DNA of 64,000 nt from Phallusia mammillata (taxonomy: Eukaryota): assembly GCA_965637545.1 (NCBI GenBank), contig OZ281496.1, forward strand, positions 26,226,001-26,290,000. The letters are read 5' to 3'. Within the stretch, counting starts at the first letter, position 1. Each line of letters opens with the position of its first letter. The translations under genes and the position numbers were made by a program. Under the pieces are notes generated by a model that ran no database searches, had not been told where the DNA came from, and was given only the letters and a program-made list of their open reading frames with translations. This document shows, in pieces, positions 1 through 48,980 of this stretch.

Positions 1-394
1 TCTTTCCAGTTTAGTAAACGTTCCTACAGCCCCTAACTGGCTTTGAAGACTTGCTGTAGATCTAGAAACCTGTACACAAAGGTTGTTTAGTTGTTTATCT
101 TTGTTACAAGTGGTTGACTTACCATAGCATAAACACCTATAAATCCTACAATCGTTGTCAAAAATAGAGCACAAATAATTCCAAAAAACCACCGTTTTAA
201 ACCTTTTTCCTTTTTCTCAAAGTTGCCCACCAATTTCGCTTGTTGTTCTAGAAAATTATTTTACATTATTTCTTGAAAACCAACTTCATTATAATACTTA
301 TACGTTGATCCGGAAGTGAAGGTTGACCAAGGTTGCAGCTCTCGTTTTCGGTGGTAATTGTTGTGTATTTAGTGCAAGCCATATCACTTGACAT
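1..394 (-). CDS. L0: type II EGF/C-type lectin receptor, 5' exons only (gene continues off the window start)
   Basis: Exons 394-304 (MSSDMACTKYTTITTENESCNLGQPSLPDQ), 247-123 ([44 protein letters not shown] helix) and 69-<1 (stalk). GT-AG introns of 56 and 53 nt in consistent phase. Near-identical to the 5' half of L1. Confidence 0.85.
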
Positions 395-657
395 TGTTGT
401 AGAACTACGGAGTTATCTCAAACGGTCCCAAAATAAAGTCCTGCACTATTAAACGAAATTGGTTACTCTACTGAATATTTCACTTCTGCCAACTTAATCT
501 TTTAAAAAACTGACTTTATATCTCTGTCATAAGCGGTATGCAATGACGATAAATACAAACGACAGGTTAACATTGCGCTTAATTTGTTAAAACTTCGAAA
601 AAAGGTGAAGGGGCGGAATCACCACGATTTAGTGCAAGCAATTTTAATTATACAAGC

Positions 658-675
658 CTCAACGAGAAACGCAAT
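658..675. promoter_or_regulatory. Shared upstream motif CTCAACGAGAAACGCAAT of the L0/L1/L2/L3 lineage
   Basis: Same block upstream of L0 (658-675), L1 (~5774-5791) and L2 (11431-11448), and as CAACGAGAA upstream of the more diverged L3 (15682-15690). Regulatory function is inferred only from conservation and position. Confidence 0.3.
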
Positions 676-1699
676 ATAAAACACCAATCTTCAATCTTCG
701 CCTATTTATTGGCAGAGAAGGGAAATGCCCAACAAAATGCAGCAATTCAATCAATTCAAATGATTGGTATTTGTTTTTGAAATTTAAGTTCAAACGCCAT
801 ATTTTCTCCTTTGAATATGTTTTCCCATGCGTTCGGGGTCAAGATCGTGTTTTCAAGCTTTAGCAATTGCCTTTTTAACACAATTCTGACGAAGCCGTGT
901 TATTAACAGTTTGAAACATTTTGTGACTGTACAAACTTTTGAAATCCCCAACGACTGTGTTTAATTCAAACATATGTTTGTAACGAAAAAGTTTAGAAAA
1001 CATGAAATTTCATCGTTTTGAAAACAAATGACAAGATATGCATTTTATTGTTATTTACACTAAATAAGTGAATCTAAATTTGCTTTAGATTGTAACACGT
1101 TTGCAACTAAATTCACAATGGAAGGCTTACCCTTCCGGTCAAGATGTTAGACTTTTTTTTAGGAAAATTATTACACTTTTGCAGCGAACTTTCTCTCTCT
1201 CACTGGACAACGGATTACTAACACACCAACGGTGGATATTTAACGTGAAGTTGAAATAGCATTTGATTGAATCCTAAAGTTGCAGGTAAAATTTATAGTG
1301 TACACCGGTGTGTAATAAATTACATCGAAAAACATGCTGAGAGAGACTTAAAAAATATTTTACTTCGTACACCGACTTGTAGGCTAACCCTTAAAACCCC
1401 ATAGAGCCTAACGTTTAAAATGTAGGGGTTGTGCGGACCGCAATATCCATACTATTACTATTGGCCCTGTTCCAACGTTGCTCACAATAATGTTTTAAAC
1501 ATATCAGCAATACCCTTTTTAAAGACTTTAGTGACCAGCTTTAGCTTACGTAAAATTTAATTGGGAAACCACTGCTCTAAAAGCAACTGACACTCTTAAC
1601 AAGTTCTCAGTAATTGTGGACGACATTACCATGCCAACCTTTTAGCCGGACAGGTCCTGTGAAAAGCATTTATATTAACATTCACTTATAGGATGCCTA

Positions 1700-2060
1700 T
1701 ATGCATGAACAATGGTTTGCGATGGTAATTACAAACTGCAAATCTGTCTTGTAGTTGCTCAATTGGTCATAGTTGGCTCACTAGGATGAAGATCAATATT
1801 GGTTGTTGTCAAGAAAACACTATCATGATATATCCGTTTACGCCATTTTGATACGTGAATAAATTTGGCCGCTGCTGTTTTGGGTATTCAACGTTATGTG
1901 CTAGAAGCCCAACATGTTTTTGTTATTTTCCTGAAAAATTGGCGTGTTCTGAGAATCGATTATATAATTGCGAACAGCTAGGTATCTCGTTCATTATGTC
2001 GCGAAATCTCTATTAAATGACATAATTTCTCGCGCCTGTCCAATTACTTGGTTCTCTGTA
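1700..2060 (-). pseudogene. Decayed CTLD exon pair (relic); duplicate at ~6820-7185
   Basis: Minus strand reads ACC AAT ATT GAT CTT CAT CCT AGT GAG CCA (TNIDLHPSEP, cf. [10 protein letters not shown]) at ~1770-1805 and AAT TGG ACA GGC GCG AGA AAT TAT (NWTGARNY, cf. NWANARRY) at ~2020-2050, with stops and frameshifts. Collinear with the relic at 17700-18105. Confidence 0.55.
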
Positions 2061-3065
2061 CCGGCTCAGTTGGCCCAAATAGCCGCTTCCTATATCGTTT
2101 GGCGCGTCACGATAAAATCAGTACTGGTTGTTAACAATGTTCTGCGTCAAGGACGCGAGCCGAGCCAATTCGCGACAATCCAATGCAGCTTAAGTTGCGT
2201 AATTGGGACATTGAGTGTATATTCTAAAAATATATTGAATGTAAATTTTGTTTATTTTTAACCACGCAGTTGTTTTGACAAACTGGTAAAAACCATTTTG
2301 CGTGGACGAATAATTTGATTTTTTGTTCTTATCAACCGTGCGAATTTTGGGTACAATTAATGTTTTTTTTTTCAACTAATACGAAAAACTTATGATATTT
2401 CTTTTTCAAAATTAGACTGGGGTTTCTTGAAAACTGTGCAGACCCTTTCCTTTTTAAATGTTAACAAACTTTATTAAGTTTTCTTTATTCACTATATATT
2501 TGCAATGTATTTGGGAAACTGTTCGAACAAAAGCGCCGAATGACAAATACAATTCCATATGCGTTTGTTTACAGACGTTTACAACCAACCGAATAATTTG
2601 CGACAGTGAACGAAAACTCCAATTATTATGTTTGCAGAAAACGATTTAGTAACATACATTATATTTCAATGTTTGCATATTGGTCGTGCTGCGACTATAT
2701 TTAATCCAACTTTACGCAACAATCTTTCAAAACAAAGTTATAGCAGATTGTTTAAAAGAATCAAGAAATTTTAACATTGCGCTAAAGGCGACACCAGTGA
2801 CTTAAATGTTTACAGTTTCATTTACAAAATATTGCCTCATAATATTGTGACCAGGGATGAACACACTTGAAACTGAAGTAATTTTATGTTCAAAGTCCAC
2901 AAACAAATTGAAAAGGTGATTTTGGGTGATTGGTCCGTTTGCACTTGAAATGGTTAACATATAAAAAAATAATTAAGAAACATGTTAACTAACATTGAAA
3001 GTATAAATGTGACTGCCATGAGATTTTAAACGCGTTACCAAGGCAAAAATCGCTCACTAAGGCAA

Positions 3066-5510
3066 TCATTGTTCACAGATTGCCAATTTGTTACTACTAC
3101 ATGGGTGATCATCCATTGCAAAATCTTGAACATAGTAAAGATGGCCACAGTCCCCACTGTTGTTTGGCTCACCAGGATAAAAATCGGTGTTGGTGTTGGT
3201 CCTGGGAACTCCATCTATATATTTCCAGACTCCTTCCCGTTCAAGGTCATTCAAACCAATCCAGTAGTCCCCGGGGAGTCGCGTTTTGATCAAATAGGTA
3301 ACAATCCAGCTTAGTATGTAAAGAATATTATTAATAAAGCCACCCACTACAGAGGTCGTCAACCGTTTTTGCACTGTGTTATTAAACAGAAATTTTATCG
3401 CGGGCCGACATGAAAAGAAAACAAATGTTCAGCAATAAAGTTATGTTACTGGTCATATGAGCTTCTATGCGGTTGACAAAGCAACCGTATGTAAGGATTG
3501 CATTATATAAATCATTTTATCATCCCTGGGATGGACCGACTGCTACAAAAATGTTGCGAAGCATTTAACGTAAAAAAGTAGAAGGCCCGTTAACGAACTC
3601 CTCACAGACCTGCATCCGGTCACCCGGTGGTTGCCGACCACTGACCTATAAAGCATTTGCACGTTTGACAGCAATTTTCACGTATTTATGCCCTAACCTA
3701 AAATAATCCAGCTATGTAACCCCACTGTTACTTACGTGGTTCATCGCAAAGTAATTTTACGAAAAAGCACTTTTTGAGACAAATGTTACGTACTTGCGAA
3801 CAGTCGCATTTCTCATTCCCCAGGTCGCCAAATCTCCACCAATTGACTGACAGTATCTCCTCGCGTTTGCCCAATTTCTTTTAGTGGTCATAATCACATG
3901 GTCATGCTCTAGCACAAAGTTATTACTTAACACTAATACATATTTTATGCAAATACATAACACTTTGATAGATACCTTGCTCACAATGGTTTCCTGAATG
4001 CCAAATGTTGCAAGAGCAGTTGTAGCCAGTACTGGTGTCCGAGCAAGTTCCGTTATGCTGACAAAGGCCGACATTAGTCGAGCAAAAATTGGGCCCTAAA
4101 AGTATTATTTTTAGGAATGTTTAGGAAATACGCTTTTTTGTTTTCTCGTTAAGCTTACGGCATTGTCTTCCATCTCCTGTGTAGTTTGCGTTGCATGAAC
4201 ATTGGAAACTACCCACTGTGTTGATACAAGTTGCGTGTTCATGACAGTTGTGTGTTCCAGTTGAACATTCATCAATGTCTGAAAATAGTTTTTTACCATT
4301 GTCTTTAGGCCAAATAAAATAACGTAACCGATACGATAACATGATAGACTGTGTTTTCGAAAAGTGGCTGAAAAAAGCTTCAACCAATACAACATACATT
4401 ATATTCTGATGCCTACCTTTTCCACAACGAATTCCACTGTACCCTGATGCACACAAACACTTGTAATGGCGGGACTCGATGATGAATAATCCACCATTAA
4501 GACAGGTAGCTAAAGTAAAAGAACGTGATATTGTTTGACAAGTTCGTTATGGGAGGTCAGGGCGTCACACAAATAATATGTACTACTTTTATCCAAGTTC
4601 TCGCTATATAAACGAATACATTTAGTCACGTTTTGTCGTGCAAGGTCACTTTCAAATAAGCTAATGTAATGCAGGAATTCAATATGTAAATAATTTTGTA
4701 AATCCCTTGTGTGTTGCGTGGAAGTTATGTGGATGTCTTCAAGTGAAAACTATTGGCCTACGTCAGTGGTTTCCAACCTGTTTTGTCCTGTTCACTCTTT
4801 TAGTCGATATTCAAATTTAATTCCCCTCTACAAATAGCTGCATTCCTGCCTTAAATCAATGATATGAGAACTTTCTTTTTCTCAGCTCATATATGGCAAT
4901 TGCAGCAATAACACATAGCACAGAAAACCACTAAGAGATTAATATTGGGACACAAATTTCCCCCTACAAATTACAAAATTCCCCCCTGGTTGAGAACCAC
5001 TACGTTGCTCTTTAAGGTTATACAGCACCCATACGCTTAGTTGTTTCCCGTTGTTATTACTAAGTCTATCTTACATAGGGAACCAAGTGCTTCAAAAATG
5101 TGTACTTACTATTGTGTCTTTCCAGTTTAGTAAACGTTCCTACAGCCCCTAACTGGCTTTGAAGACTTGCTGTAGATCTAGAAACCTGTACACAAAGGTT
5201 GTTTAGTTGTTTATCTTTGTTACAAGTGGTTGACTTACCATAGCATAAACACCTATATATCCTACAATCGTTGTCAAAAATAGAGCACAAATAATTCCAA
5301 AAAAACACCGTTTTAAACCTTTTTCCTTTTTCTCAAAGTTGCCCACCAATTTCGCTTGTTGTTCTAGAAAATTATTTTACATTATTTCTTGAAAACCAAC
5401 TTCATTATAATACTTATACGTTGATCCGGAAGTGAAGGTTGACCAAGGTTGCAGCTCTCGTTTTCGGTGGTAATTGTTGTGTATTTAGTGTAAGCCATAT
5501 CACTTGACAT
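3066..5510 (-). CDS. L1: intact type II membrane protein, tail-TM-stalk-3 EGF-CTLD (327 aa)
   Basis: Exons 5510-5420, 5363-5239, 5185-5110, 4509-4417 (4-Cys EGF TCLNGG..CLC..RC), 4278-4159 (cbEGF DIDEC), 4095-3976 (EGF), 3908-3794 and 3309-3066 (CTLD with WIGLND, EPN, MDD and four core Cys). All introns GT-AG, total 984 nt, open frame. No signal peptide and one N-proximal hydrophobic helix. Confidence 0.92.
3350..3643. mobile_element. Old hAT-type MITE in the last intron of L1 (orthologous copies at 8483-8776 in L2 and 30236-30520 in L6)
   Basis: Ends CAG(A/G)GGTCG(T/G)CAACC ... GGTTGCCGACCACTG. TSD is degraded. Same intron position in three genes. Confidence 0.65.
4764..5002. mobile_element. 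hAT/Charlie-like MITE in L1 intron 3
   Basis: Terminal inverted repeats CAGTGGTTTCCAACC ... GGTTGAGAACCACTA. No clean 8-bp TSD found. Confidence 0.55.
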
Positions 5511-8500
5511 TGTTGTAGAACTACGGAGTTATCTCAAACGGTCCCAAAATAAAGTCCTGCACTATTAAACGAAATTGGTTACTCTACTGAATATTTCACT
5601 TCTGCCAACTTAATCTTTTAAAAAACTGACTTTATATCTCTGTCATAAGCGGTATGCAATGACGCTAAATGCAAACGACAGGTTAACCTTGCGCTTAATT
5701 TGTTAAAACTTCGAAAAAAGGTGAAGGGGCGGAATCACCACGATTTAGTGCAAGCAATTTTTATTATACAAGCCTCAACGAGAAACGCAATATAAAACAC
5801 CAATCTTCAATCTTCGCCTATTTATTGGCAGAGAAGGGAAATGCCCAACAAAATGCAGCAATTCAATCAATTCAAATGATTGGTATTTGTTTTTGAAATT
5901 TAAGTTCAAACGCCATATTTTCTCCTCTGAATATGTTTTCCCATGCGTTCTGGGTCAAGATCGTGTTTTCAAGCTTTAGCAATTGCCTTTTTAACACAAT
6001 TCTGACGAAGCCGTGTTATTAACGGTTTGAAACATTTTATGACTGTACAAACTTTTGAAATCCCCAACGACTGTGTTTAATTCAAACATATGTTTGTAAC
6101 GAAAAAGTTTAGAAAACATGAAATTTCATCGTTTTGAAAACAAATGACAAGATATGCATTTTATTGTTATTTACACTAAATAAGTGAATCTAAATTTGCT
6201 TTAGATTGTAACACGTTTGCAACTAAATTCACAATGGAAGGCTTACCCTTCCGGTCAAGATGTTAGACTTTTTTTTAGGAAAATTATTACACTTTTGCAG
6301 CGAACTTTCTCTCTCTCACTGGACAACGGATTACTAACACACCAACGGTGGATATTTAACGTGAAGTTGAAATAGCATTTGATTGAATCCTAAAGTTGCA
6401 GGTAAAATTTATATTGTACACCGGTGTGTAATAAATTACATCGAAAAACATGCTGAGAGAGACTTAAAATATTTTACTTCGTACACCGACTTGTAGGCTA
6501 ACCCTTAAAACGCCATAGAGCCTAACGTTTAAAGTGTTGAGGTTGTGCGGACCGCAATATCCATACTATTACTATTGGCCCTGTTCCAACGTTGCTCACA
6601 ATAATGTTTTACCATCTCTAAACATATCAGCAATACCCTTTTTAAAGACTTTAGTGACCAGCTTTAGCTTACGTAAAATTTAATTGGGAAACCACTGCTC
6701 TAAAAGCAACTGACACTCTTAACAAGTTCTCAGTAATTGTGGACGACATTACCATGCCAACCTTTTAGCCGGACAGGTCCTGTGAAAAGCATTTATATTA
6801 ACATTCACTTATAGGATGCCTATATGCATGAACAATGGTTTGCGATGGTAATTACAAACTGCAAATCTGTCTTGTAGTTGCTCAATTGGTCATAGTTGGC
6901 TCACTAGGATGAAGATCAATATTGGTTGTTGTCAAGAAAACACTATCATGATATATCCGTTTACGCCATTTTGATACGTGAATAAATTTGGCCGCTGCTG
7001 TTTTGGGTATTCAACGTTATGTGCTAGAAGCCCAACATGTTTTTGTTTTTTTCCTGAAAAATTGGCGTGTTCTGAGAATCGATTATATAATTGCGAACAG
7101 CTAGGTATCTCGTTCATTATGTCGCGAAATCTCTATTAAATGACATAATTTCTCGCGCCTGTCCAATTACTTGGTTCTCTGTATTGGCTCAGTTGGCCCA
7201 AATAGCCGCTTCCTATATCGTTTGGCGCGTCACGATAAAATCAGTACTGGTTGTTAACAATGTTCTGCGTCAAGGACGCGAGCCGAGCCAATTCGCGACA
7301 ATCCAATGCAGCTTAAGTTGCGTAATTGGGACATTGAGTGTATATTCTAAAAATATATTGAATGTAAATTTTGTTTATTTTTAACCACGCAGTTGTTTTG
7401 ACAAACTGGTAAAAACCATTTTGCGTGGACGAATAATTTGATTTTTTGTTCTTATCAACCGTGCGAATTTTAGGTACAATTAATGTTTTTTTTTCAACTA
7501 ATACGAAAAACTTATGATATTTCTTTTTCAAAATTAGACTGGGGTTTCTTGAAAACTGTGCTGACCCTTTCCTTTTTAAATGTTAACAAACTTTATTAAG
7601 TTTTTTTTATTCACTATATATTTGCAATGTATTTGGGAAACTGCTCGAACAAAAGCGGCGAATGACAAATACAATTCCATATGCGTTTGTTTACAGACGT
7701 TTACAACCAACCGAATAATTTGCGACAGAGCACGAAAACTCCAATTATTATGTTTGCAGAAAACGATTTGGTAACATACATTATATTTCAATGTTTGCAT
7801 ATTGGTCGTGCTGCGACTATATTTAATCCAACTTTACGCAACAATCTTTCAAAACAAAGTTATAGCAGATTGTTTAAAAGAATCAAGAAATTTTAACATT
7901 GCGCTAAAGGCGACGCCAGTAACTTAAATGTTTACAGTTTCATTTACAAAATATTGCCTCATAATATTGTGACCAGGGATGAACACACTTGAAACTGAAG
8001 TAATTTTATGTTCAAAGTCCACAAACAAATTGAAAAGGTGATTTTGGGTGATTGGTCCGTTTGCACTTGAAATGGTTAACATATAAAAAAATAATTAAGA
8101 AACATGTTAACTAACATGGAAAGTATAAATGTGACTGCCATGAGATTTTAAACGCGTTACCAAGGCAAAAATCGCTCACTAAGGCAATCATTGCTCACAG
8201 ATTGCCAATTTGTTACTACTACATGGGTGATCATCCATTGCAAATTCTTGAACATAGCAAAGATGGCCACAGTCCCCACTGTTGTTTGGCTCACCAGGAT
8301 AAAAATCGGTGTTGATGTTGGTCCTGGGAACTCCATCTATACATATATGTATATCCAATCTCCTTCCCGTTCAATAAGGTCATTCAAACCAATCCAGTAG
8401 TCCCCGGGGAGTCGCGTTTGGATCAAACAGGTAACAATCCAGCTAAGCATGTAAAGAATATTATTAATAAGACCACCCACTACAGAGGTCGTCAACCGTT

Positions 8501-9235
8501 TTTGCACTGTGTTATTAAACAGAAATTTTATCGCGGGCCGACATGAAAAGAAAACAAATGTTCAGCAATAAAGATATGTTACTGGTCATATGAGCTTCTA
8601 TGCGGTTGACAAAGCAACCGTATGTAAGGATTGCATTATATAAATCATTTTATCATGCCTGGAATGGACCGACTGCTACAAAAATGTTGCGAAGCATTTA
8701 ACGTAAAAAAGTAGAAGGCCCGTTAACGAACTCCTCACAGACCTGCATCCGGTCACCCGGTGGTTGCCGACCACTGACCTATAAAGCATTTGCACGTTTG
8801 ACAGCAATTTTCACGTATTTATGCCCTAACCTAAAATAATCCAGCTATGTAACCCCACTGTTACTTACGTGGTTTATCGCAAAGTAATTTTACGAAAAAG
8901 CACTTTTTGAGACAAATGTTACATACTTGCGAACAGTCACATTTCTTATTCCCCAGGTCGCCAAATCTCCACCAATTGACTTACAGTATCTCCTCGCGTT
9001 TGCCCAATTTCTTTTCGTGGTCATAATCACATGGTCATGCTCTAGCACAAAGTTATTTTATTAACACTAATTCATATTTTGTGCAAATACATAACACTTT
9101 GATAGATACCTTGCTCACAATGGTTTCCTGAATACCAAATGTTACAAGAGCAATTGTAGGCAGTACTGGTGTCCAAGCAAGTTCCGTTATTCTTGCAAAG
9201 GCCGACATTAGCCGAGCAAAAGTTGGGCCCTAAAA
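5117..9235. repeat. Segmental tandem duplication A, copy 2
   Basis: Near-identical to 1-~4100. Confidence 0.95.
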
Positions 9236-10810
9236 GTATGATTTTGAAGAAACGTGCAAGAAATTATGATACTTTGCTTCCTAATAAAGCTTACGGCATT
9301 GTCTTCCATCTCCTGTGTAGTTTGTGTTGCGTGTTGGTGACAGTTGTGTGTTCCACTCGTACATTCATCAAAATCTAAAAGGTATATTCAGAGTTAAATA
9401 AGGCACGTTTAGTTTCACACGGTGTAGTTTTGAGTTATGACCTAAAATGCATGGGCTATAGGGTTGACATGAAACAAAATAATGATTTCATTATTTAAAA
9501 TTTTCAAATGATATTTTACCCAATTTCAAACTAACAAATAACATTGCAAGACAGAAATCGCATAATGTTGTAAATATGTTGGCATATTTAAGGCCTTTTG
9601 TAAACGATTCGTGACTTTAACGTTGCTATGAGATGATCGATTTACTTCATGTGTGTCGGTTCCAGTGCAACATAAAACTTTGAAATTATTGGGAAGAAAC
9701 GCGATAAACGCGCTGCTCATCGCCCTAGCTAATAATGTGTGGCATTTCCCAGCTGCTATGTTTCACTTAATAGCTGGCAAAAATCATCTTTTACAGTATA
9801 TGGCTGTTTTTATGCACGCAAAACGTATCAAAGACAGTGTAAATTACAAAGGATCTCACGTGGTCTCCCCGATCCTCAGGAAGTTGGCCGTTGGTCGTAA
9901 CTTACCACATTGTCTTCCATTCGTTCACAAAATGCAACAACTGACTTTATCTGGTGCTATGTCTCATTGTTAACTCGCTTACCACACTGTGTTCCATTTC
10001 CTGTGTAGTTTGCGTTGCAGAAACATTGAAATCCGCCCACTGTGTTGATACAAGTTGCATGTCTATAGCAGTTGTGTGTTTTACTCAGGCATTCATCGAT
10101 ATCTGAAAATAGTTTTGCAATTAACTCATTAAGTTTTTGCATATTTTTGCTTTGGATAAGCACAAATGTGGAAATATCAATATTCATGCAAATAATGTCA
10201 ATAAAGAAACGTTTTACCGTTTTCGCAATGTTGCCCACCAAATCCCGAAGCACATACACACTTGTAATGGTTTAACTCAACAACAAAACTTCCGTTATTA
10301 AGGCAGGTACCTGAATGCAAAACAACAAATACATTATTTATACTGTACTTACTGCTTTGGCGTGAATGTTGTCAAATGGCGTATTATTCGAACTATTATA
10401 TTATTATTCTGTAGATAGTAGATCTAAAATCGTCTTTTTTACCTTTAAGTTGTTTTGAAGGCTTTGAAACCTGAAAATACATATTTCGGTTATTTGATGA
10501 ACACGCACCGTATGAAATGTTTTACTCACTATCACAAAAACTCCAATGAATCCACAAGTCGTTGCTGTAAAAAGGCCAAAAGTAATTCCCAGAAAGAGAC
10601 GTTTAGAAACTGAAACGTTTTTTACAAAATTGTTTGCCAATTGTGTTTCTTGTTTTGTGGGAATTGGAGTAGTTTTGCAATCTACAAAAAAAGCATATTA
10701 AATAAAGCACAGAGAAATAAACTGTCAACCTCAATGACCTGGACATGACTTCGATTACCTTCAAACATACATGTCTGATATCTTGGCTGTACATCTTCAT
10801 CGGACGCCAT
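8188..10810 (-). pseudogene. L2: disabled type II EGF/CTLD receptor gene
   Basis: Exons 10810-10759 (MASDEDVQPRYQTCMFE), 10681-10530 (TM), 10470-10443 (9-aa stalk), 10310-10218 (4-Cys EGF), 10102-9983 (cbEGF), 9374-9295 (cbEGF with a 40-nt deletion), 9229-9110 (EGF), 9041-8927 and 8442-8188 (CTLD). An 8-nt insertion in the last exon creates TAG at 8339-8337 before the EPN motif. Start codon assignment is tentative. Confidence 0.85.
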
Positions 10811-11488: not shown

Positions 11489-12016
11489 CAGTGGTTCCCA
11501 ACCGCCGGTCCGCGTAAATATTTTGCCGGTCCCCAAATTATTTTACTTTATTTATACTTTTTAAAGTAGGCCTATTGCAAAGTTGTTGGTACTTATTGAA
11601 AAGTTGTTGACTGTAAAACTGGGGTAGCTCTCCATCGTTGATATCCGCAAAATTATTTAATAAAGCTTTTGTGCCGTTTATGATTGTTTTTTTTATAAAC
11701 TGCGTTTAGCATTCAACGTTTTTTTTTGTAAAGCAAAGTTATTCTTCACTTTTAAGATTGAGATTCATACTGAAAGCTAAACAACAGCAAACATCCCACT
11801 AATATTGATTTTGTATGTAAATAGATTGGCGTTTTGTTGTTAAAGTTGATTGCCGTTTGGTTGCAATTTTTCGTCCTAAATACATCGGCTATGACTAAAC
11901 CTTGCATTACGTTGCGCAACGACAACTTTGGTGAACAAATAGCATACAAATATCTGTTGCATTTACTACGATCTTTTGTTGCCGGTCCGGTGGCGTAGAA
12001 AGGTTGGGAACCACTG
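11489..12016. mobile_element. Non-autonomous hAT element (MITE), 528 bp
   Basis: TIR CAGTGGTTCCCAAC / GTTGGGAACCACTG with 8-bp TSD ATTTATCT at 11481-11488 and 12017-12024. Confidence 0.9.
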
Positions 12017-17652: not shown

Positions 17653-17699
17653 TAGCTATACAAAGTGTTGCAAATCCACCGCTCACAGGTTGCAAATAT

Positions 17700-27037: not shown

Positions 27038-27052
27038 TGAATGACGAATGCA

Positions 27053-33389: not shown

Positions 33390-33441
33390 ATCTAGTGCAT
33401 TTAAAAAATCATTCGTTTTAGTTCATGGACACCCTTTAGAA

Positions 33442-34542: not shown

Positions 34543-34782
34543 TGCAGCGAGTTACTAAGCAATTTACGCTCGTGGGCTCATCTCTGTATTTTGCTCACTC
34601 TTTGCCTTAAGGGTTATTTGTATTCCTGCGTAGTTTAATTACATTCCTTAGTTCCGCTTAAAGTCTCTCATTTTCTTGTTGCTTTCCTCAGTTGTAGTTT
34701 TCGCGTTTACTTGACTTATAGTGTCGATCTCTGTTGTTTAAAGCTAATAAATATTATTACGTTTATGTAGTCAATTACTGCA
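34543..34782 (+). mobile_element. Probable solo LTR, 240 bp
   Basis: Begins TGCAG, ends CTGCA, 5-bp TSD CCCTG, AATAAA at 34746-34751 near the 3' end. Empty site ATTACCCTGTTC in the paralog near 21366-21377. Confidence 0.7.
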
Positions 34783-37338: not shown

Positions 37339-37699
37339 CAGTGGCGTAGGCATCCAAAAATTTTGGGAGGGGCCAAATGATTTGTTGTCTAATACAACTT
37401 TTTGCTAACGCTCAGCGTGCTTTTACCAAACACGTGACTTGCCAAACTGTGGTTCGACGGAACAGCCAAACGCTTTATTGATTTATTCCATGTCTACATA
37501 AATCAAAAAAGCATGGATTTCGGCTTACAACTTGGTGACAAAAGTCATTTTTGGTAATAAATATATTCCTTTGATAGTTGAGAGACGAAACCACAATGAT
37601 GAGGGACGAAACTACACTAAATTTAAGTTTATCAATGTAACACTTTGAAAATTTGGGAGGGGCCATGGCCCCTTTGGCCCCTCCCTGGCTACGCCTTTG
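37339..37699. mobile_element. hAT-type MITE, 361 bp
   Basis: Ends CAGTGGCGTAGGC / GGCTACGCCTTTG; TSD CTGTAGGC at 37331-37338 and 37700-37707. Absent from the paralogous site near 23730. Confidence 0.85.
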
Positions 37700-38091
37700 C
37701 TGTAGGCTACTTAAAAAATAAGGATTTCGTCAAAACTGTAAAAGTGCATAGGCCAATAGACAAAAGCATAGCCGCATATAAACATAATCTTATCAAAATG
37801 TCCCTACTTTACAGAAAAATGATAATAATTAATCTTTAATAATATACAAAATCAAACTTAATCACACATTGGTTTCTGCACGCCTGAACTAAGGCTAAAT
37901 GTGCATGCATTCTATCAGAATTATGACAAATGAAAGACGCTTTCGTGACTGCAGTACAGTACATGCAAAAACAACCTAACACTATAGCAAGGACTTTACT
38001 TAATTACAACGCAACTGGTTTCATAAAAAGTGTATGGGTTTTACACATTAATCGATCACATTTAAAACGTTATGTTATTTTGGTGTGAGCC

Positions 38092-39752
38092 TTAAGTAGT
38101 TCGCTCGCAGATGGCCAACTTGCGCCGTCCACATGGGTGGTCATCCATTTTGAATCCGGTACCATACAAGTAAGCGCAGTCGGAACCAGCCACGTCGTTT
38201 GGCTCACCAGGAAAAAAATCGGTATTGGCTCTTGTCATTGGAACACCGTCAATGTATTTCCAAACTCCTTCTTCTTCAAGGTCATCTAATCCAACCCAGT
38301 AATCCGCTATTGGGCGCGTTTGGAGCAAATTTTCGATAATCCAACTTTAGATTTAAAAGCAAACAAATAAAGTACAGTAAATGCAACGGGTTGTTTTATC
38401 GCACAAAAAGTGGAATTCTTGGACCTGCAAAGGGCCGCTATGGAATTCCATTTAAAAAGCGTTTAATTCTTTCTTCGTCTTTCGTTGATGTTACACAATG
38501 TTTTATGTGTCTAATAAACTCGGTACCTGCGAACAGTTGCATTTCTCATTCCCCACGTCGCCAAATCTCCACCAATTGACTGACAATATTTCCTTGCGTT
38601 TGCCCAATTTCTTTCAGTGGTCATAATCACGTGTTCAAGCTCTAATACAGAGGTGTTTGTAAAACCAAATCATATTTTGTGCAGTTTCATAACGCCACCA
38701 ATAATACCTTTCTCACAATGGCTTTCTGAGTACCATACTTTGCAAGAGCAATTGTAGGCAGTACTGGTGTCCAAGCAAGTTCCGTTATGCTGGCAAAGGC
38801 CGACATTAGTTGAGCAAAAGTTGGGTCCTTAAAGTATAAATATTAGAGACATCCAGACATTTGTAATATTCTGTTTTCTAGTCAAGCTTACGACACCGCT
38901 TGCCATCTCCTTTATAGTTTGCGTTGCATGAACACTGGTAGCTACCCACTGTATTTGTGCAGGTTGCGTGTTGATTGCAGTCATGGGTTTGAGTTGAGCA
39001 CTCATCAATATCTAAACATATTTATTGGTTGGTAAGACTGACAGGCCCATAATCCGCGAACAATTTCAACTGAGGTTTTTACAATTTACCTTTTTCGCAT
39101 CGAATTCCACTGAACCCTGAATCACACAAACACTTGTAATGTAGGGATTGAATGACGAAAAATCCACCATTAAGACAGGTGTCTGAATGAAAGACAAATG
39201 GTTGCAAAAGCGTCTCAACATTAAATCTCTTCTCTAAGTTTAAGCTAACGTTAAAGGTTATGTTCGAAATGTTTTTCGATTAAAAATTAATTTACCACTT
39301 TTATTAGGCACCTATAAGAACTATTAATAGTCAACGGTTACCGTTGTGTCTTTCAAGCTTAGTGAATTGCCGCACCTCTCCCAACTCGTTTTGAATGTTT
39401 AAAGCCTAAAAATCATGTCTTTGAATGTTTTGTTGAAACTTTTTAGAAGAAAAAATACTTACCATAAAATGAACTCCTACAAATTCAAAAACGATTGTCA
39501 AAAAAAGAGCAAAAGCAATTCCCAAAAACAGTCTTTTAGAAGTTGTAACGTTTCCGGTCAAGATTTCGGACAATTTTGACTTTTTTGCCTGGTCTTGCAT
39601 TGTTTTGCAATCTAAAAAACTCTACGTTATCTCATGATTTATCCAATTATCCCAATTTATGCAAAATACTTACGTTGATCAGGAGTTGACAGCTCACCAA
39701 TCTTGCAGTTTTCTTCTTGAACGTCCATGGTTATGTATTTATTTGAAGACAT
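38092..39752 (-). CDS. L7: intact type II EGF3-CTLD receptor (330 aa)
   Basis: Exons 39752-39674 (MSSNKYITM..), 39611-39463 (TM with internal Glu), 39405-39342, 39182-39090, 39011-38892, 38827-38708, 38641-38527 and 38344-38092 (EPNDVAGSDC..MDD). 993 nt, open frame. Confidence 0.92.
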
Positions 39753-40631
39753 TTTTTTCGTTAGGACGTAACTTTTCTTCGGCTATTTTCCTTTATACTG
39801 TCTGTTGATTTGTTGAAGACCCACAATTTACGTTGCAGTATCTACCTTTTTTTCAGTGTATTGCAATAATGGCTAAAAATCCTATTGCCCACAATGTATA
39901 GTTGTAAAATAACGTTGACAAAACTAAATTTAGACACCTTTGGCTACAAATGCCACCAAAACAAAGGCAAGGTAGATGTGTCCTGTCATATAAATGCACG
40001 GAAATGGCTCGTTTTGTACTAATGAGCGCAGTTTGGCACACGTTACGTCAAAGGAAGAGAATGTCGTTAAAATTGCCATAAATCAATCGCACAAAGTGAC
40101 TGGTTTCTTTGAATCGCTAATTAATGAACTGATGTGGTGTGTTGTTGCCGTCGTAAATTTTTGGCATGCGACAGTTTCCATATTCCTTCACTAATTTTTG
40201 CCTGGCCATCGAAAGCGAAATTACTTTTTCCTTTTCGGTTTGTTTGCGAGATTTGAACCTAAAGAAACCTCTAACTGTTATTTGGAAATCAAATTTCTAG
40301 TCATTAAATATTGCAGCTTAATTACTTTCCACAATAAGTCATTTTAGATTTGTAAAGTTTTTTTTTTTTTACTAGGACTTGCTTTTCAGCTATTGCCCTG
40401 TTCTTACCAAAAGTACACACTGGTTAAAATATTTCACTAGTTTATGTAGGCTATTTCGTTTTTTCGTTACACATTGTAGCATTAAAATAATTCTCTGACT
40501 AGCCACACGAAACTGTTTGAAATCATTTTTGTGTGTTTTAGTTGGTCAACTTGAACATACAATGATGTGCCTTCCATATATCGGACTTTAATTTGTTGGC
40601 ATTGTAACTGGAATTTAAATCAATAGTAAAA

Positions 40632-40990
40632 ATGGAAACTAAAGAAAAATCAAAGCTGACAGGTTTGTTTCTGAATTCATATGTAGTTTACATAGTACGT
40701 GTACAATGTTGCATAGGCCCAATTCATTTTTAAAACAGGTTTTTGAATCGAGTATACCTATGTTAGTCATTCAAATCGCTCATGATAATGATGGCATAAG
40801 CGCTGGCCAGACGCCTGAGAATAAACCGTGTGAGTTTTTTTCGTCCGGTATTCCCAGTATATTTCTCATTAGGGTATTTTGGATTGGAAACGCGCCAAAA
40901 TCAATCTTGTTATTTGCAGTTGTAATCTTTAAATTTCCACTGTATTGCCAAAAAAATTGCGATTGCAGTCAAGATGGCCACAACAACTGA
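40632..40990 (+). pseudogene. Best-preserved MET-family relic: two-exon ORF of 85 aa, possibly a small membrane peptide or a truncated gene
   Basis: 40632-40662 (METKEKSKLT) |GTTTGT..TTAG| 40767-40990 in frame (VIQIAHDNDG..RVFWIGNAPKSILLFAVVIFKFPLYC..). No downstream exons found. Confidence 0.35.
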
Positions 40991-41325
40991 TATCTTTGAA
41001 CTAACATCTTTAAACCTTCAATGGACAAAACATAAGTTATATGTAATGTATTGATTACAGCTCTGCCCAGTTTTTTTAACACCATTCCTTTGTGGTAACG
41101 CTTGTTGGTTTGATGTAGTACACTTATAATGAAAAAATACGTTATGGTATGTGGTAGGTACTAGTTAGTTTGTTGCATGTGAAAGTAATATGACGTCACA
41201 AGGAAACAATCTAACAAACCAAAGGCATTGTTATTTCATTGTTTAAACAATGGTTTTGTAAAACTGTGTTTTTTTAATGGCAATCTTTACTGCGTGTAGT
41301 TTGAACTTTCACACTTGCTGCCATC

Positions 41326-44198
41326 ATGTCCTATAATCGGGGAAGAAGAAATACGAAAAACGCCTACATTGTTCCCGACCGAAAAAACACCACCAAAACC
41401 CTTTCAGGTAACCTTAGCTTGATTTTTTGTAAGCTTTTAAAATCTTTTTTGTGTTTCATGCAGGTCATCGCTTGGGTGGCTTTAAACCGACTCAGCCACG
41501 GTCACTGCAACACGTTGTTAAAGATGTGGACGATTTGCGTGGTGTAGTAGTAGGAATTTCAAGTGTAATGCTTATCACATTCATTTGCGGATTTGCAACA
41601 ACTTATATTTTGGTATGTAGCCTTGGAAAGAGTATCGACGCAATGTATACTAGCGCAATTTTTCCATGTTTATTTATTATCAGGAGTGGGTTTAGTTTAC
41701 CGTAAACATCCCGCGCTCTCAAACATTTTTCATGATGTCAAAATCCAGTTGCACATTCATAAGATTTTTTCTTTGCATTGGAATCTTACATTGTGGTTTA
41801 GATATGTTCTTGAAGCCTAAACACTGAAAATTCCAGTTCAAATTTTTACCAGGGTTTAAAAGAGCGAGTTGTTTTGTAGGTGCCGCGTTTTGTTAGAATA
41901 CTTAGGTTTGGTAATGTTATGCTCAAAAGTTGTTTTGTAGCGAAGGGTTATTGTTGGCTGCATATATATAAGTTATAACCTACCTAAAGTGTGGTTACAT
42001 ACTACTTTCAGATTTTGGGATACGAACCGCCACAAGAAAAATACAACGGTATTACAAATATAGTTTATTCGTAGTAGGCTACTGTGCTCTTAACAAAATC
42101 CCTTTTTTACAGGTACATGTCTCAACAATGGATCATTTAATTTTAGTGTTGAATCACTTGATTTCAATTGCATTTGTACTCCGGAATTTACAGGACACGA
42201 TTGTGGAATTGGTGAGTTTAGGAGCAAAACCCTTTAAAATTTGTTTTTGGTGCATGTGCGCATCTGGATCGCTGGATTTCAGCTAAAATTTTCAAAAAGT
42301 ACTAACACGTTTATATGTTTACACACACCACCTCTTACCTAAAAGGGTAAAACTGTTAAAATACGCAAGAAACCGATTAAAAATAAATAGTATGAGGTTT
42401 TTATCCAAAGCGTTTTTTAATGGCGTGGTCTTTCAAATCATTTGAAAATAATTCAAAAGCCTTTTTTTATCTGTGTTATTTGTGACATTTAGACATAGAT
42501 GAATGTTTGATTGGGACTCATAACTGCAGCCACCAGGAGGATTGCACAAACTTATATGGAGGTCACCTGTGTACTTGTAACTCAAACCACACTCAAAATG
42601 GCACCCAGTGCAGTAAGTCATATCAAAAGATCTGACAAAGTTACGAATTGGATCTTTTTGTCCAACGTGCATAAGACTAAAAAGTACTGACTATATTTAC
42701 TTCGTTGGTAGTTTCTGATTCGATATTGCAATGCGCGACCTGGGCAATGTTATAGCCAAAGAAACAATTAAACGGTGGGAAGTTTTGTAATGTGTATAGG
42801 CTTTACTTTTAAAATAGTTACAGCCGAGTATAGTGCGCCTAAAATAGCATTAAAAGTACAAGTCGCCTAAAAATTGTATCAATTTGCAGCACCTAACTAC
42901 TGTTCTTCTAATCCGGGACTTTGCATACATGGGACATGTGTGGATACAACTACAGATTATGATTGTTTATGTGAACGTTGGTGGGAAGGCAAAAACTGTG
43001 ACAGTAAGCTGCTACGCTACATAAAACAAATGCTGTCCAAAATTTATTTTTATATTTTTTATAGGCAATTATAATTTGAACTTAAATTAAATTTGTAGCC
43101 TCTCAAGCTTGCTAAACGAAAACAAGAAATGTTCACAGCGCGTAGAAACGTTTTGCATCCAACTTTATTCTGTAAACCTAAAACTTATGTGTTTTATGTT
43201 TATCCTTTGCAAATAAATTTTACTTCACAATAACTCGCTCATTTTGTTTTCCCTATAAATCACGACAAAGTATAGAATCAGCTAAAGCAGTGGTTGCCAA
43301 AATATATGCTTGACAATTCTAAACATTCTTATTCCTTCCCAATAGACTATATAGTGGATGCTTAACCATACAAAGATCATTGAATTAAAGTTAATTTCTC
43401 CCTTCAAGTTTTAAAATTGTATTATATATGTTGTAGTTCCAAGTCGTCATGCATTGTCAAACAGATGGCGCAACTGGACGAGTGCAAGGGCACTTTGTCA
43501 AAAGCTCGGCGCAGACTTAGCGCACTGGGGAATGCAAGATCCAATAGTTAGAAGGTAAAATATTAAAGATTCAAACGATGTGTATTTATTTACCAAGCAT
43601 TACTGGTTGCCGGCTATAACTATACTGGCAACTGTATTTGAACTAGCAACAAAACAATTTACTGAATATGCTTGTGAACACAAGTGTTAACCTTTTAGGC
43701 TTAACTCTCTTCGACAACAATACAACACCATTAAAGAAACATTGATTACTGTAAAATAATAATTTATAGTTGCTTTAGTAAGTGGGTCCTGAGTTGGGAC
43801 CCAAATCCGAATATGTAGGCATAAAACCAGGGCAGAACCCACTAAAAAATGTGATTCAAACCCACCAGCCCTGTACCTCCTCTACTCAAATATAGGATTT
43901 TAGCTAAAAATATTATGAATTGTTTTTTACCAGACGATTAGTCGATTTCTTGCTTCGTCCCCAAGGCGGTGCATTTTGGATCGGTTTAACGGACCTAGAT
44001 GTGGAAGGTGAATGGAAGTACATTGATGGTGTAGCAATAACAGACAGCAATTCCAATTTTAATCCCAACGAACCAAACAACCTTGGAGGCTCAAATGACG
44101 CGAATTGTGCCGTGATAAAAGAATATTATGGCTTTCGAATGGACGATATTGACTGCGGTGCACTCCGAAACTCAATTTGCGAGAAAAGTCGAATATGA
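41326..44198 (+). CDS. L8: plus-strand type II EGF3-CTLD receptor (325 aa if the short stalk exon is used)
   Basis: Exons 41326-41407, 41464-41612 (TM GVVVGISSVMLITFICGFATTYIL), 41880-41910 (short stalk; the homologous long form 41853-41910 has TAG), 42113-42211 (4-Cys EGF), 42493-42612 (cbEGF), 42890-43003, 43437-43554 and 43934-44198 (FWIGLTD..EPN..MDD). AATAAA at 44232. Confidence 0.75.
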
Positions 44199-45518
44199 AC
44201 TTCAGTTTTATGGCATTTTTCTTGGTAGTACAATAAACTTTACATTCAAAAGTGATGCACTTGCTGCCTCAGTTGCTTTTAAAGCCGCCCACGAATGATT
44301 GTTACTTTTGACAAGCGACATTGGACAATAACGATCAAATTTGTTGCAATCGTTGCGAGTTGAAACATTTGACCGTTTAATCACTCGAGGCTTTGATAAA
44401 TTTTGCAGAATTACTCGATCGCCAAGCAGCCGTTTTGGCTCCGCTAATATTTTTCCAGGTACATTTTTTTTCGTTGAAATTCAGTGTTGACACAAATGTA
44501 CGTCCTAATTTCCGTGTTCTCATTCCAACAGGTATTCCATGATAGTTTCCACACGGAATATGCGCAATCAACATGCTTTTCTAGATATTTTACCAATGCC
44601 AATGAGGATATGGAAGATATGTTTTTGTATTCACTTTGGTTCGTAACGACCTAGCAGTTAAGGTATTTCTTGATATTGTCCTTATTGTAAACATGACTAG
44701 ATGAATGTGTTATGTGGTACACAGTAGAAGTACATTGCCCCGAGAGGGTCGGTTATAAACATTTAATATCACACTTGTTACTTTATTTACTTTTATGTTA
44801 ATGATGTTACAATGTGTAAACGCTGCCAGTGCTCAGGTTTTAAACGATCTATCTTTGTTGTTAAACGCATGGTAAATCTTTGTTGTATTTGTTTTTACAA
44901 AATGCTTCTATGAGAAGTACTTGGATGCTTTTCAGGTGGTTAGTAATGATGAACAGATTGCATTTGTTTGTTGACAGCTATTACCCTGTTTTTGCTAAAA
45001 GCAGATACTGGTTAAAATATTTATAATCATGTGAGGTTTTTGTCCTGTATTCCCAGTATATTTCTTATGAGAATATTTTGGATTGGAAACGCGCCAAAAT
45101 CAATTTTGTTATTTGCAGTTGTAACGTCTTTAAATTTCCACTGTGTTACCAAAACTTAAAATTACTATTGCAGTCAAGATGGCCACAACAACTGATATCT
45201 TTGAACTAATATCTTTAAACCTTCAATGGACAAAACATGTATGAAATGTAATGATTACACCTCTGCCCAGTTTTTTGACATCATTCCTTTTTGGTAACGC
45301 TTGTTGGTTGATGTAGAAACACTTATAATTAAAAAATACATTATGGTGTGTAGTAAGTACAAGATTGTTGCATGTGCAAGTAATATGACGTCACAAGGAA
45401 ACAATCTAACAAACCAATGGCATTGTTATTTCATTGTTTAAACAATGGTTTTGTAAAACTGCTTTATTAATGACAAATTTTACTGCTTGCAGTTTGTCAT
45501 TTAACAGTTGCTGCCATT

Positions 45519-48500
45519 ATGTCCCATAATCGGGGAAGAAGAAATACCGAAAACGCCTACATTGTTTCGGACCAAAAAAATACCGCCCAGACCTATTCAG
45601 GTGACCTTAGTTTGCTTTTTTTGAAAGCTTTTAAAGTCTTCTTTGTGTTTCATGCAGTTCAGCGCTTGGGTAGCTTTAAACCGACTCAGCCATGGTCACT
45701 GCAACACGCTGTTAAAGATGTTGACGATTTGCGTGGTGTGGTATTAGGAATCTCTAGTGTAATGCTTATCACATTCATTTGCGGATTTGCAACAATTTAT
45801 GTTTTGGTATGTAGTCTGTGTTTGGAAAGAGTGTATGGAAGCAATGTATACAAGAACCGTTAAAGTTTAAGTACCGTAAACTGCCCGCGCTCTCAGTAAA
45901 AACCTTTTTGAATACATCCCGCATTTTCGCAAATTAAAAAAAGATTAAACTGTTTCGTTTTCTTTTATTCATAATGTAAAATCAAGTTTCACCTTACCCC
46001 TTACATTGTTGTTTAAATATGTTCTTAAAGCCTTGACATTGAAAATCCAGGGTTTCAAACAGTGAGTTCTTTTGTACTTACCACGTGTTGTTAGAATACA
46101 AAAGTTTGGTAATATTATGCTTATTAGTTGTTGTTGTTTTTTGTATCGAAGAGCATTGTTGGCTGATTTATAAATAATTTGAATACATATATATATATAT
46201 ATAAATAAATAAATATATCCTACTTAAACTGTGATTACATTTTTAGATTTTGGGACACGAACCGCCACAAGAAAAATACAACGGTATAACTAATATATTT
46301 TATTTGTAATAGGCTACTGTGCTCTCAATAAAATCCCACTTTTGCAGGCACATGTCTCAACAATGGATCATACAATTTTAGTGTTCAATCTCTTGATTTC
46401 AATTGTATTTGTACTCCGGAATTTACAGGACAGGATTGTGGAATTGGTGAGTTTAGGATTGTGAAACTTTTGGGTTTGTTTATTGATGCATGTGCGCATC
46501 TGGATCGGTCGCTTTAGATGAAAATCGCAAAAAGCGCTAAAACGTATGTCTACACACACCACTTCTAAAACTATTTGGTGAAACTGTTAAAATACACGTA
46601 ACAGACTGATTTAAAACAAATAGTATCAGGTTTTTATCCAAACGTTTTTTAATGGTGTGCTGTTTCAAATCGTTTTAAATTAGTTCAAAACTATTTTTTT
46701 CCATCTGTGCTATTTCTAACATTTAGACATAGATGAATGTTCGATTGGGACTCATAACTGCAGCCACCGGGAGGATTGCACAAATTTATATGGAGGTCAC
46801 CTGTGTACTTGTAACTCAAACCACACTCGAAGTGGCACCCAGTGCAGTAAGTCGTATCAAAAGATGTGGCAAGGTTACGAATTGGATCCTTTTTTTTCCC
46901 AATTACTACAAAGGCTCAAAATGTTGTCGACTTTGTTTACTTTGTTGGTAGTTTCTGATTCGATATTGCAATGCCCGACCTGTGCAGTGTTAAGGGCAGA
47001 GAAACAATTAAACGGTGGGCAGTTTTGTAATGTATACAAGCTTTACTTTTGACATAGTTACAAACAAGTACAGTGCGCCTAAAATGGCGTAAAAAGTATA
47101 AGTCGCCTAAACCAGTGGTCGGCAACCGCCGGTCCGCGAGGAGTTAGTTACCGGGCCGTATGCTATTTCCGGTTAAATGCTTTTTAACATTTTGCCCATG
47201 TGTCTCGGGGAATATAAACTAACTTAGTCGTTTTCATTGGTAAATATTTGTAGTTTTTTGAAGGCCGGTCCTCGATAAAATTTCGGTTTCAAAAACGGTC
47301 CTTGGTACAAAAAAGGTTGCCGACCCCTGGCCTAAACAACCTACGCTTTTGCAGGAACTAACTACTGTTCGGCTAATCCGGGGCTTTGCATACATGGAGC
47401 ATGTGTGGATACAACTACAGATTATGACTGTATATGTGATAGCTGGTGGGAAGGCAAAAACTGTGACAGTAAGCTGCTACGCTATATAAAATAATGCTGC
47501 CTAAAATTTGTTTTGCCCGAAATATTTCGGCAAGCACGTATAATTTGGACTTGAACTTAATTTGGAGCCCCCTGCTCTGATCGAGCTTGCAAAAGGAAAA
47601 CAAGAAATGTACATATCGCACAAACACGTTTTGCATCCGTCGCAACTTTATTCTGTAAACCTATAGCTTATATGTTTTGCGTTTATCCACAGCAAATGTA
47701 TTTTACTTCACAGCAACTCGCTCATTTGGTTTTCTCCATTAATCAAGACAAAGTAGAATCAGATAAAACAGTAGTTCCTAACATTTTTCGACGAATTCCA
47801 CATTTGACAATTCAAAACATGCTTATTCCTTCCCAATGGACTGCATAGTGGATGCTTAACCATACAAAGATCATTTAATTAAAGTTAATTCCTACCCTCG
47901 AGTTTCAAAATTTCTTTCCGGTTGGCAAGCACACAATTAACACACCAACACGACATATCAGGTGACAATAAAAAAGATTATTTTATTATATATATTGTAG
48001 CCCCAAGTCGTCATGCCTTGTTAAACAAATTGCGTAATTGGACGCATGCAAGGATACATTGTCAAGATCTCGGCGCAGACTTAGCGCACTGGGGGATGCG
48101 AGATCCAATAATTCGAAGGTAAATGTTACATGGCACAAGAATGAATATTTATTTTCCAAGCATTACTGGTTGCTCGTTGTTGCTACTGGCAACTGTGTTC
48201 GAACCAGCAACAAAACAATTTGCTAAATATGTGAACACACGTGTTAATTCAAAGGATGAATCTGTTCGACAACAATACAAGAAAACCATTGAAGAAACAT
48301 TGATTATAGTAAAAAAATATTTTATAGTTGGTTCAGTGAGTGGGTCCTTAGTTGGGACACAAACCCGAACATCCAGGCCTAAAACCAGGGCAGAACACAT
48401 TTTTTTTAAATCGTTCCAAAGTTAGGTTTCGTATGTGGAAACTCAGACATGAAAATACAAAGTTAAGTTTCAGGCTACAGTTAAGTTTATTTATAAGCTT

Positions 48501-48980
48501 ATTCAAAACTAAGCCCAAACTTGGCCCGAAAAGCCCGGTCCGACTGCTCTTGTTTGTTAGGCTGAATATCATATGTGATAAAAAGTTGATTTAAACCCAC
48601 TGCTCTTTTTTGTTAGGCTAAATATGATAAAAAGTTGATTCAAACCCAGCGTGTACCTCCCTTACATTAGGATTTTTAGCTAAAAATATTATGAATTGTT
48701 TTTTACCAGACAAATAGTCGATTTCTTGCTTCGTCCTCTTGGCGGTGCATTTTGGATCGGTTTAACGGACCTTGATGTGGAAGGTGAATGGAAATACATT
48801 GATGGTGTAGCAATAACAGAGAGCAATTCTAATTTCAAAACCAACCAACCAAACAACGTTGGAGGCGAATTGTTAAAGGACGCCAATTGTGCTGTCATAA
48901 AAGAATACGATGACTTCCAAATGGACGATATTAACTGTGATTTAATCCGAAACTCTATTTGCGAGAAAAGTCGAATTTGA
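45519..48980 (+). pseudogene. L9: paralog of L8, all exons open except the putative stalk exon (in-frame TGA); pseudogene or rescued by unidentified splicing
   Basis: Exons 45519-45600, 45658-45806, 46051-46108 (TGA at 46063-46065), 46348-46446, 46727-46846, 47355-47468, 48001-48118 and 48710-48980 (QPN..MDD). AATAAA at 49011. Confidence 0.65.
47113..47329. mobile_element. hAT MITE in an L9 intron, 217 bp
   Basis: TIR CAGTGGTCGGCAACC / GGTTGCCGACCCCTG; TSD GCCTAAAC at 47105-47112 and 47330-47337. Absent from the L8 paralog. Confidence 0.9.

Follow-up and report, generated by a model that had tools for sequence, protein, structure and literature searches.

The window analysed here is a 64,000-nucleotide stretch of Phallusia mammillata contig OZ281496.1 (GenBank assembly GCA_965637545.1, positions 26,226,001 to 26,290,000, forward strand), most of which is occupied by a tandem array of genes for putative membrane-bound C-type lectins. 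A six-frame motif scan and tblastn with the exon peptides of one locus identified 11 paralogous loci (L0 to L10) and two relic fragments of EGF modules within positions 1-48980, where an earlier note on this DNA had counted a tandem cluster of at least ten. Exons encoding a transmembrane (TM) helix, EGF modules and a C-type lectin domain (CTLD) were found in a common order at all 11 loci, repeated across 1-48980. Nine loci, L0-L8, lie on the minus strand and the remaining two, L9 and L10, on the plus strand, and the window is AT-rich (GC content, 0.33-0.41). Seven loci have intact open reading frames (ORFs) of 327-501 amino acids (aa) in hand-built models:

3066-5510, minus strand: L1, intact, 8 exons, 327 aa, three EGF modules and an EPN-type CTLD
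12662-15412, minus strand: L3, intact, 12 exons, 501 aa, seven EGF modules
18505-20631, minus strand: L5, intact, 8 exons, 335 aa
29955-32267, minus strand: L7, intact, 8 exons, 327 aa; a mosaic whose 5′ half resembles L5 and whose CTLD resembles L1
38092-39752, minus strand: L8, intact ORF, 8 exons, 330 aa
41326-44198, plus strand: L9, intact, divergent subfamily (~40% identical to L1-L8), 8 exons, 327 aa, EPN
45519-48980, plus strand: L10, intact, 83% identical to L9, 329 aa, QPN in place of EPN

The models were built from a base-by-base reading of L3 and then from the aligned 5′ regions of seven loci and of L9/L10. All introns in the seven intact models have GT-AG borders (53/53), and donors and acceptors are conserved at homologous positions across loci, including paralogues that are only 40% identical. 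The first exon (E0) encodes the start of the cytoplasmic tail, and the second (E1) the remaining tail and the TM helix. These are followed by a stalk exon of 12-38 codons, a truncated EGF module with four cysteines, a calcium-binding EGF (cbEGF) module (DIDEC ... CxNxxGSFxC), a plain EGF module, a CTLD N-exon and a CTLD C-exon. Every EGF exon is of phase 1-1 and encodes one module. Six genes have three EGF modules and L3 has seven, owing to the duplication of cbEGF/EGF exon pairs, which added two extra pairs (internal repeat 13535-14014 vs 13912-14393, 84%). A mini-intron of 53-62 nt directly follows the TM helix; it must be spliced out, because its length is not a multiple of three in L1 and it contains an in-frame stop in L5, L7 and L8. 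In six genes the start codon of the model is the first ATG to follow an upstream stop, and L3 has a second candidate start, an in-frame ATG 12 codons upstream. The TM exon of L8 (39463-39611) encodes a Glu in mid-helix where the paralogues have Gly, the ORF being otherwise intact.

Pfam scans of single exons matched the domain families that the earlier note had expected. Two terminal exons matched Lectin_C at 48.3 and 37.9 bits (E = 1.9e-12 and 3.2e-9; gathering cut-off, 22.6 bits), and EGF exons matched EGF_CA/EGF_3 (E = 1e-8 to 1e-14), as well as EGF and partial EGF. These scores are far beyond chance, and alignments showed the four conserved cysteines and the WIGL motif of the CTLD. A single hydrophobic helix, at about residues 46-81, is present in each protein; the N-terminus is polar and without a signal peptide, and all parts C-terminal of the helix are disulfide-rich. 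The single helix, the polar N-terminus and the disulfide-rich C-terminal side together point to a type II topology. With seven intact ORFs, Pfam matches and one helix each, the plan proposed previously, namely a tail, a TM helix, a stalk, 3-7 EGF modules and a C-terminal CTLD, was upheld. The CTLD is terminal, and no match to sushi or CAP domains was obtained. The TM helices contain no Lys or Arg in any model. Reading the tails by eye, we found no ITIM ([ILVS]xYxx[ILV]), and the Tyr motifs present are YITM in L5, L7 and L8 (YxxM) and YTTI in L1 (TxYxxI). At the putative sugar-binding site, EPN occurs in six genes and QPN in L10; the WND position is invariably MDD, and Asp, Asn or His takes the place of the Glu that precedes the second Cys.

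The L3 CTLD exon, used as the query of an exhaustive HMMER search, retrieved a 337-aa P. mammillata protein, CAB3231610.1 (A0A6F9DA22; hereafter P0051), named "C-type lectin domain family 4 member F-like". Its exon joins are identical to those of the models, including removal of the mini-intron ("...GM|VSK..."), and it matched Lectin_C at 44.9 bits. P0051 is encoded outside the window, the exon-level tblastn identity to the window loci being at most ~60%, and no record of the contig that encodes it was found. Its naming by best Ciona hit matches the style of a de novo egg-to-larva transcriptome (PMC7237864). The earlier note held that its proposal would fall if no spliced transcript joined TM exons to CTLD exons; P0051 has this join, which answers the point at the level of the family, and no transcripts of the window genes were found.

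Three further P. mammillata proteins (P0152, P0064 and P0151) carry the EGF-CTLD module behind LCCL domains, P0152 also with a signal peptide and P0064 with QPD at the EPN position, and they are secreted relatives. P0151 shares the seven-EGF expansion with L3, a sign that exons may have been shuffled between the secreted and the membrane-bound proteins; no LCCL exon was found in the window. Homologue searches with P0051 (whole, or residues 100-337) returned only P. mammillata relatives and no protein of the same architecture (185-590 aa) elsewhere. Among the best 150 matches of the exhaustive HMMER search with the CTLD exon, which were mostly unrelated multi-CTLD proteins, only P0051 combined a TM helix, EGF modules and a terminal CTLD. 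A homologue search with a single CTLD exon, an uninformative query, yielded one candidate, which was no match. The seven window proteins were absent from the protein collections searched. No description of a type II EGF-stalk C-type lectin came up in a literature search, and the sole public member of the family bears only an automatic name.

Reads from four runs (X1-X4) were placed on 38050-44049, the L8/L9 region. X1 and X2 are DNA, as seen from their even depth over introns and intergenic sequence and from a heterozygous indel of 385 bp within an intron of L9. Their contigs support the assembly of 38050-44049 at single-copy depth. The indel (41621-42005) lies in the intron after the TM exon, and both forms are present at similar depth in the two runs. 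At 38450-38649, on the CTLD N-exon, the summed contig depth is ~16x single-copy in both DNA-like runs, indicating that the genome holds many more copies of the family. The contigs obtained from the RNA-type runs X3 and X4 were all short, 95-99% alike and confined to the conserved CTLD N-exon; they derive from other paralogues, and in one RNA-type run a paralogous CTLD transcript reached a depth of ~99. Contigs of run DRR090687 (L001, L002 and L003) contain at least three divergent CTLD exons of the family, ~45-55% identical to the window copies and to each other. In L001 the exon order cbEGF-EGF-CTLD N-exon-CTLD C-exon is kept, with short introns.

For the fold, a full-length AlphaFold2 model of P0051 on an 8-row alignment was unusable (pLDDT 37.8), and a model of the ectodomain with 60 rows was used instead (pLDDT 81.5, and >90 in the CTLD). 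The predicted CTLD superposed with a root-mean-square deviation of 1.6-1.9 Å on Mincle, Dectin-2, DC-SIGN, MBP and collectins; searched alone against the PDB, it matched Mincle, Dectin-2, DC-SIGN(R), MBP, collectin-11 and the tunicate lectin TC14. Multi-domain matches among Swiss-Prot models were headed by the G3 regions of neurocan, aggrecan and brevican, followed by residues 236-435 of CLEC18A/B/C and the N-terminus of the sea-urchin protein suREJ, and a structure search of the Atlas ranked neurocan and versican first. The sequence similarity of the CTLD is highest to carbohydrate-recognition domains (CRDs) of CLEC4 proteins, the mannose receptor and collectins. On this model, the head would be a classical sugar-binding CRD, with an EGF-CTLD junction like that of lectican G3 and CLEC18 and membrane anchoring like that of group II receptors.

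Each of these three parts has a known counterpart. Group II receptors (ASGPR, DC-SIGN, langerin, and the CLEC4 proteins Mincle, Dectin-2 and BDCA-2) likewise have a short tail, a signal-anchor and a single C-terminal EPN-type CRD; they are also clustered in the genome and gave the best sequence and single-domain fold matches. They differ in their coiled-coil or plain neck, which drives oligomerisation, whereas the array proteins have 3-7 EGF modules, and MDD in place of WND; at ~25% identity, no orthology was shown. The G3 region of lecticans (aggrecan, versican, neurocan and brevican) is alike in carrying EGF modules, one of them Ca-binding, directly N-terminal of the CTLD. However, lecticans are secreted proteoglycans with a sushi domain after the CTLD, the identity is ~20%, and the order of the EGF modules is different, being cbEGF, plain EGF and CTLD in the array proteins. 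The SEEC/CLEC18 proteins of group XVI (CAP-EGF-EGF-CTLD) share the EGF-EGF-CTLD arrangement with the CTLD last (PMC514892, PMC11103991), and their fold match extended over ~215 residues. Unlike the array proteins, they are secreted, have an N-terminal CAP domain and no TM helix, and form a small conserved family rather than a decaying array. The secreted LCCL-EGF-CTLD paralogues of P. mammillata follow a CLEC18-like logic with a different head domain.

Group V receptors of the NK complex (KLR, CLEC2 and NKR-P1) resemble the array in their type II CTLDs, tandem arrangement and birth-and-death evolution, and CD94-like proteins have been described in tunicates (BsCD94-1 and CiCD94-1; PMC5465252). 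In group V the Ca/sugar site is lost and an ITIM or a charged TM residue is present, whereas the array proteins keep EPN or QPN with MDD, contain EGF modules and have no ITIM; membership among NK receptors was rejected, the sugar site being retained. Selectins and the thrombomodulin/CD93 group (XIV) also combine a CTLD and EGF modules in the membrane, but as type I proteins with an N-terminal CTLD, and kinship with them was rejected on topology and domain order. Teneurins share the type II topology and the EGF rod, but are very large and have no CTLD; the Pfam match to EGF_TEN was weak and below the cut-off. To our knowledge, none of the remaining vertebrate CTLD groups joins a CRD head, the EGF-CTLD junction and a type II anchor. 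Groups XIV and XVI also lack this three-part combination (PMC514892). The claim that vertebrate CTLD groups have no type II topology with EGF spacers holds on classification. The further statement that the architecture fits neither the plain-stalk type II receptors nor the type I EGF-CTLD proteins stands for the full combination, but it overlooked that EGF modules do occur directly before a C-terminal-side CTLD in vertebrates, in lectican G3 and SEEC/CLEC18 (PMC514892, PMC11103991).

The intact copies are under purifying selection, as indicated by whole-gene pairwise dN/dS values of 0.25-0.42. Segments of one and the same gene pair can differ in dS by a factor of up to ten: the values for the 5′ part and the CTLD are 0.09 and 0.71 for L5-L7, 0.97 and 0.08 for L1-L7 (CTLD omega ~1), and 0.18 and 1.4 for L1-L3. 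This mosaic pattern points to segment exchange between copies by unequal crossing-over or gene conversion, and indicates that these are functional genes exchanging segments. In a tree of the EGF-CTLD module, the TM-type and LCCL-type proteins grouped against outgroup CTLDs and L9/L10 formed a long branch, the inner forks being unresolved. Column entropy was lowest in the fold core, GEPN and MDD, and highest in three places: a stretch rich in indels that follows EPN, the strand leading up to MDD, and the residues immediately beyond MDD. In solved CRDs these high-entropy positions surround the sugar site. The family had been described as rapidly evolving; this is true of the residues around the sugar-binding site, where variability is concentrated, but the overall dN/dS speaks for constraint.

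Broken copies and repeats lie among the intact genes:

1-394, minus strand: L0, 5′ exons only (E0, 304-394; TM exon, 123-247; stalk exon, 1-69)
8188-10810, minus strand: L2, a pseudogene with its own 5′ exons
16404-18088, minus strand: L4, relic CTLD exons with stops (16404-16621, 17545-17655 and 18008-18088; tblastn)
16717-17079, minus strand: a retroelement-like ORF of 120 aa, interrupting L4
22723-22964, minus strand: relic EGF fragments with a stop, a duplicate of 36297-36540
24124-24556, minus strand: L6, a terminal CTLD exon with the last Cys lost and the 5′ part lost
24545-30017, no strand assigned: a palindrome with ~2-kb arms around a gap at 27053-27252
36297-36540, minus strand: relic EGF fragments with a stop (tblastn)

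The L0 exons are a 97% copy of the 5′ exons of L1, and the body of L0 lies beyond the left edge of the window. In L2, one cbEGF exon (9983-10102) lacks a GT donor, a second (9295-9374) has been shortened by a deletion of 40 nt, and insertions of 3 and 8 nt in the CTLD exon (8188-8442) lead to a frameshift and a stop. The 3′ body of L2 is a tandem duplicate of L1 at 97.4% identity. The 120-aa ORF within L4 matched no family in a Pfam scan, and we take it to be the C-terminal part of ORF2 of a non-LTR retrotransposon. The interleaving of intact, broken and relic copies noted earlier was thus recovered, with L2, L4 and L6 as broken or relic loci besides the two EGF relics. The duplicated units run from mid-gene to mid-gene (1-4197 = 5117-9333, 97.4%; 18989-24556 ~ 30654-38541).

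The gap is the sole run of N in the window. It is flanked by a 544-bp direct repeat (26509-27052 = 27253-27796, 100% identical), which looks like two overlapping contig ends, and the inverted arms (24545-26522 vs 30017-27837) are ~99% identical. At 24551-24604 on the plus strand, the left arm includes the final 60 bp of the last L7 exon in inverted orientation. The palindrome may exist in the genome or may have been created by a fold-back error in assembly. L6 is homologous to L8 only as far as 24556, a point within the CTLD N-exon at which the inverted repeat starts; because of the palindrome, the apparent truncation of L6 is unsafe and may be real or an effect of assembly. The family exons nearest to the gap, the CTLD exon of L6 (ending at 24360) and the last exon of L7 (starting at 30198), are each ~2.7 kb away, so that no gene model depends on frame or continuity across it. 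A reading frame across 27053-27252 was rejected, the gap lying in non-coding repeat. A dispersed non-coding repeat of ~700 bp occurs between the lectin genes (11655-12368, 26169-26882 and 27253-28189), the copies at the gap forming the fold-back; weaker copies lie at 21489-21843, 34897-35258 and 40491-40886. An Rfam search over the whole window yielded no family at the gathering score.

We propose, with a probability of about 0.78, that the locus is a tandem, duplication-prone array of P. mammillata genes for single-pass type II EGF-stalk C-type lectins. Each protein would start with a cytoplasmic tail of ~50 residues, cross the membrane as a signal-anchor helix and continue through a very short stalk and an EGF rod to one C-terminal CRD. 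The rod, stiffened by its Ca-binding module, would hold the CRD ~8 nm (three EGF modules) to ~20 nm (seven EGF modules) from the membrane by our own estimate from typical EGF dimensions, and the number of modules would set the reach of the head. The CRD may bind sugars of the mannose/GlcNAc/fucose type in a Ca-dependent manner via the EPN...MDD site. The hypervariable stretch that separates and follows the two motifs would tune its specificity, and the N-terminal Tyr motifs may mediate uptake, sorting or signalling.

Several points weigh against this proposal. The N-in/C-out orientation appears to be the only sensible one, but it was read from the position of the helix and the cysteine pattern. 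Ca and sugar binding is only plausible, because MDD stands for WND and Asp, Asn or His for the Glu ligand, and the Tyr motifs of the tails are short and absent from L3. The mRNA origin of P0051 is deduced from the style of its name, and no L8 or L9 transcript was detected in the RNA-type runs X3 and X4. The number of copies may be wrong by one or two, given the 97.4% duplication (1-4197 vs 5117-9333) and the palindrome at the gap.

As for function, the most likely single role, at less than even odds, would be that of a glycan sensor at the surface of blood or epithelial cells, acting in pattern recognition or endocytosis; immune, allorecognition and "NK-complex-like" roles are analogies. A more far-reaching version, which we consider unlikely, is a polymorphic, fast-recombining recognition system for self/non-self, gametes or microbes, in which the phase 1-1 EGF exons and the CTLD exons would be swapped among neighbours and with the secreted LCCL-EGF-CTLD genes. 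If so, the receptors would vary in both reach and glycan specificity, and the array would be an invertebrate-chordate counterpart of the NK and APLEC complexes built on another stalk principle.

A role in developmental or structural adhesion (cell-matrix, tunic or epidermis), akin to the binding of matrix proteins by lectican G3, is improbable. The neurocan, aggrecan and brevican G3 regions are the best multi-domain fold matches, the TM-type protein and several secreted LCCL-EGF-CTLD paralogues probably come from an embryonic/larval transcriptome, and the paralogous CTLD transcript at depth ~99 would fit such a role. However, adhesion genes are usually few and conserved, whereas this family shows pseudogenes, indel-variable loops and EPN/QPN/QPD switches; moreover, it has no sushi module, and its CTLD sequence is closest to the CRDs of CLEC4 proteins, the mannose receptor and collectins.

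Gamete recognition, in which a lectin on the sperm or egg surface would bind the vitelline coat and diversification would be reproductive rather than immune, seems improbable too. The vitelline coat of P. mammillata is dominated by GlcNAc/GalNAc and sperm binding requires GlcNAc recognition, but the known ligand-binding activity of its sperm is a glycosidase, not a lectin (PMC3528131). EPN-type sites accept GlcNAc, and the sea-urchin sperm receptor suREJ, whose N-terminus was among the fold matches, has EGF and CTLD modules. The tandem turnover of the array and the CTLD omega of ~1 for L1-L7 would also be in keeping with such a role, while the sole transcript-derived paralogue apparently stems from egg-to-larva data and is silent on sperm.

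That the array is largely non-functional or artefactual, with TM and EGF/CTLD exons in separate transcripts or with assembly or haplotype duplicates, is very improbable: the lack of RNA for the window loci (reads on L8/L9), the 97.4% tandem duplicate, the palindrome with its gap and the absence of all seven proteins (0/7) from the collections searched would fit, but seven ORFs of 327-501 codons are free of stops in DNA of 36% GC, dN/dS lies well under 1, subfamilies that are 40% identical have kept their exon phases and splice sites, P0051 has the same joins, and DNA contigs from two runs back 38050-44049 at the depth of a single copy.

Type II EGF-stalk lectins as proposed here would add a third design to those of type II lectin receptors, in which an EGF rod takes the place of the coiled-coil neck or disulfide stalk, and their modular exons would allow stalk length and head to be swapped easily. 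This is not a new principle but a construction from ordinary parts, since CTLD expansions that are confined to one lineage and bring new domain combinations are frequent among invertebrates. The window offers seven concrete, apparently unannotated genes for the study of ligands, tissues and polymorphism.

Beyond the array, positions 50846-64000 hold a different repeated gene set. Two of its ORFs (61020-61274 and 63499-63762) are similar to each other, and the surrounding segments 60828-61510 and 63309-64000 match at 73%.

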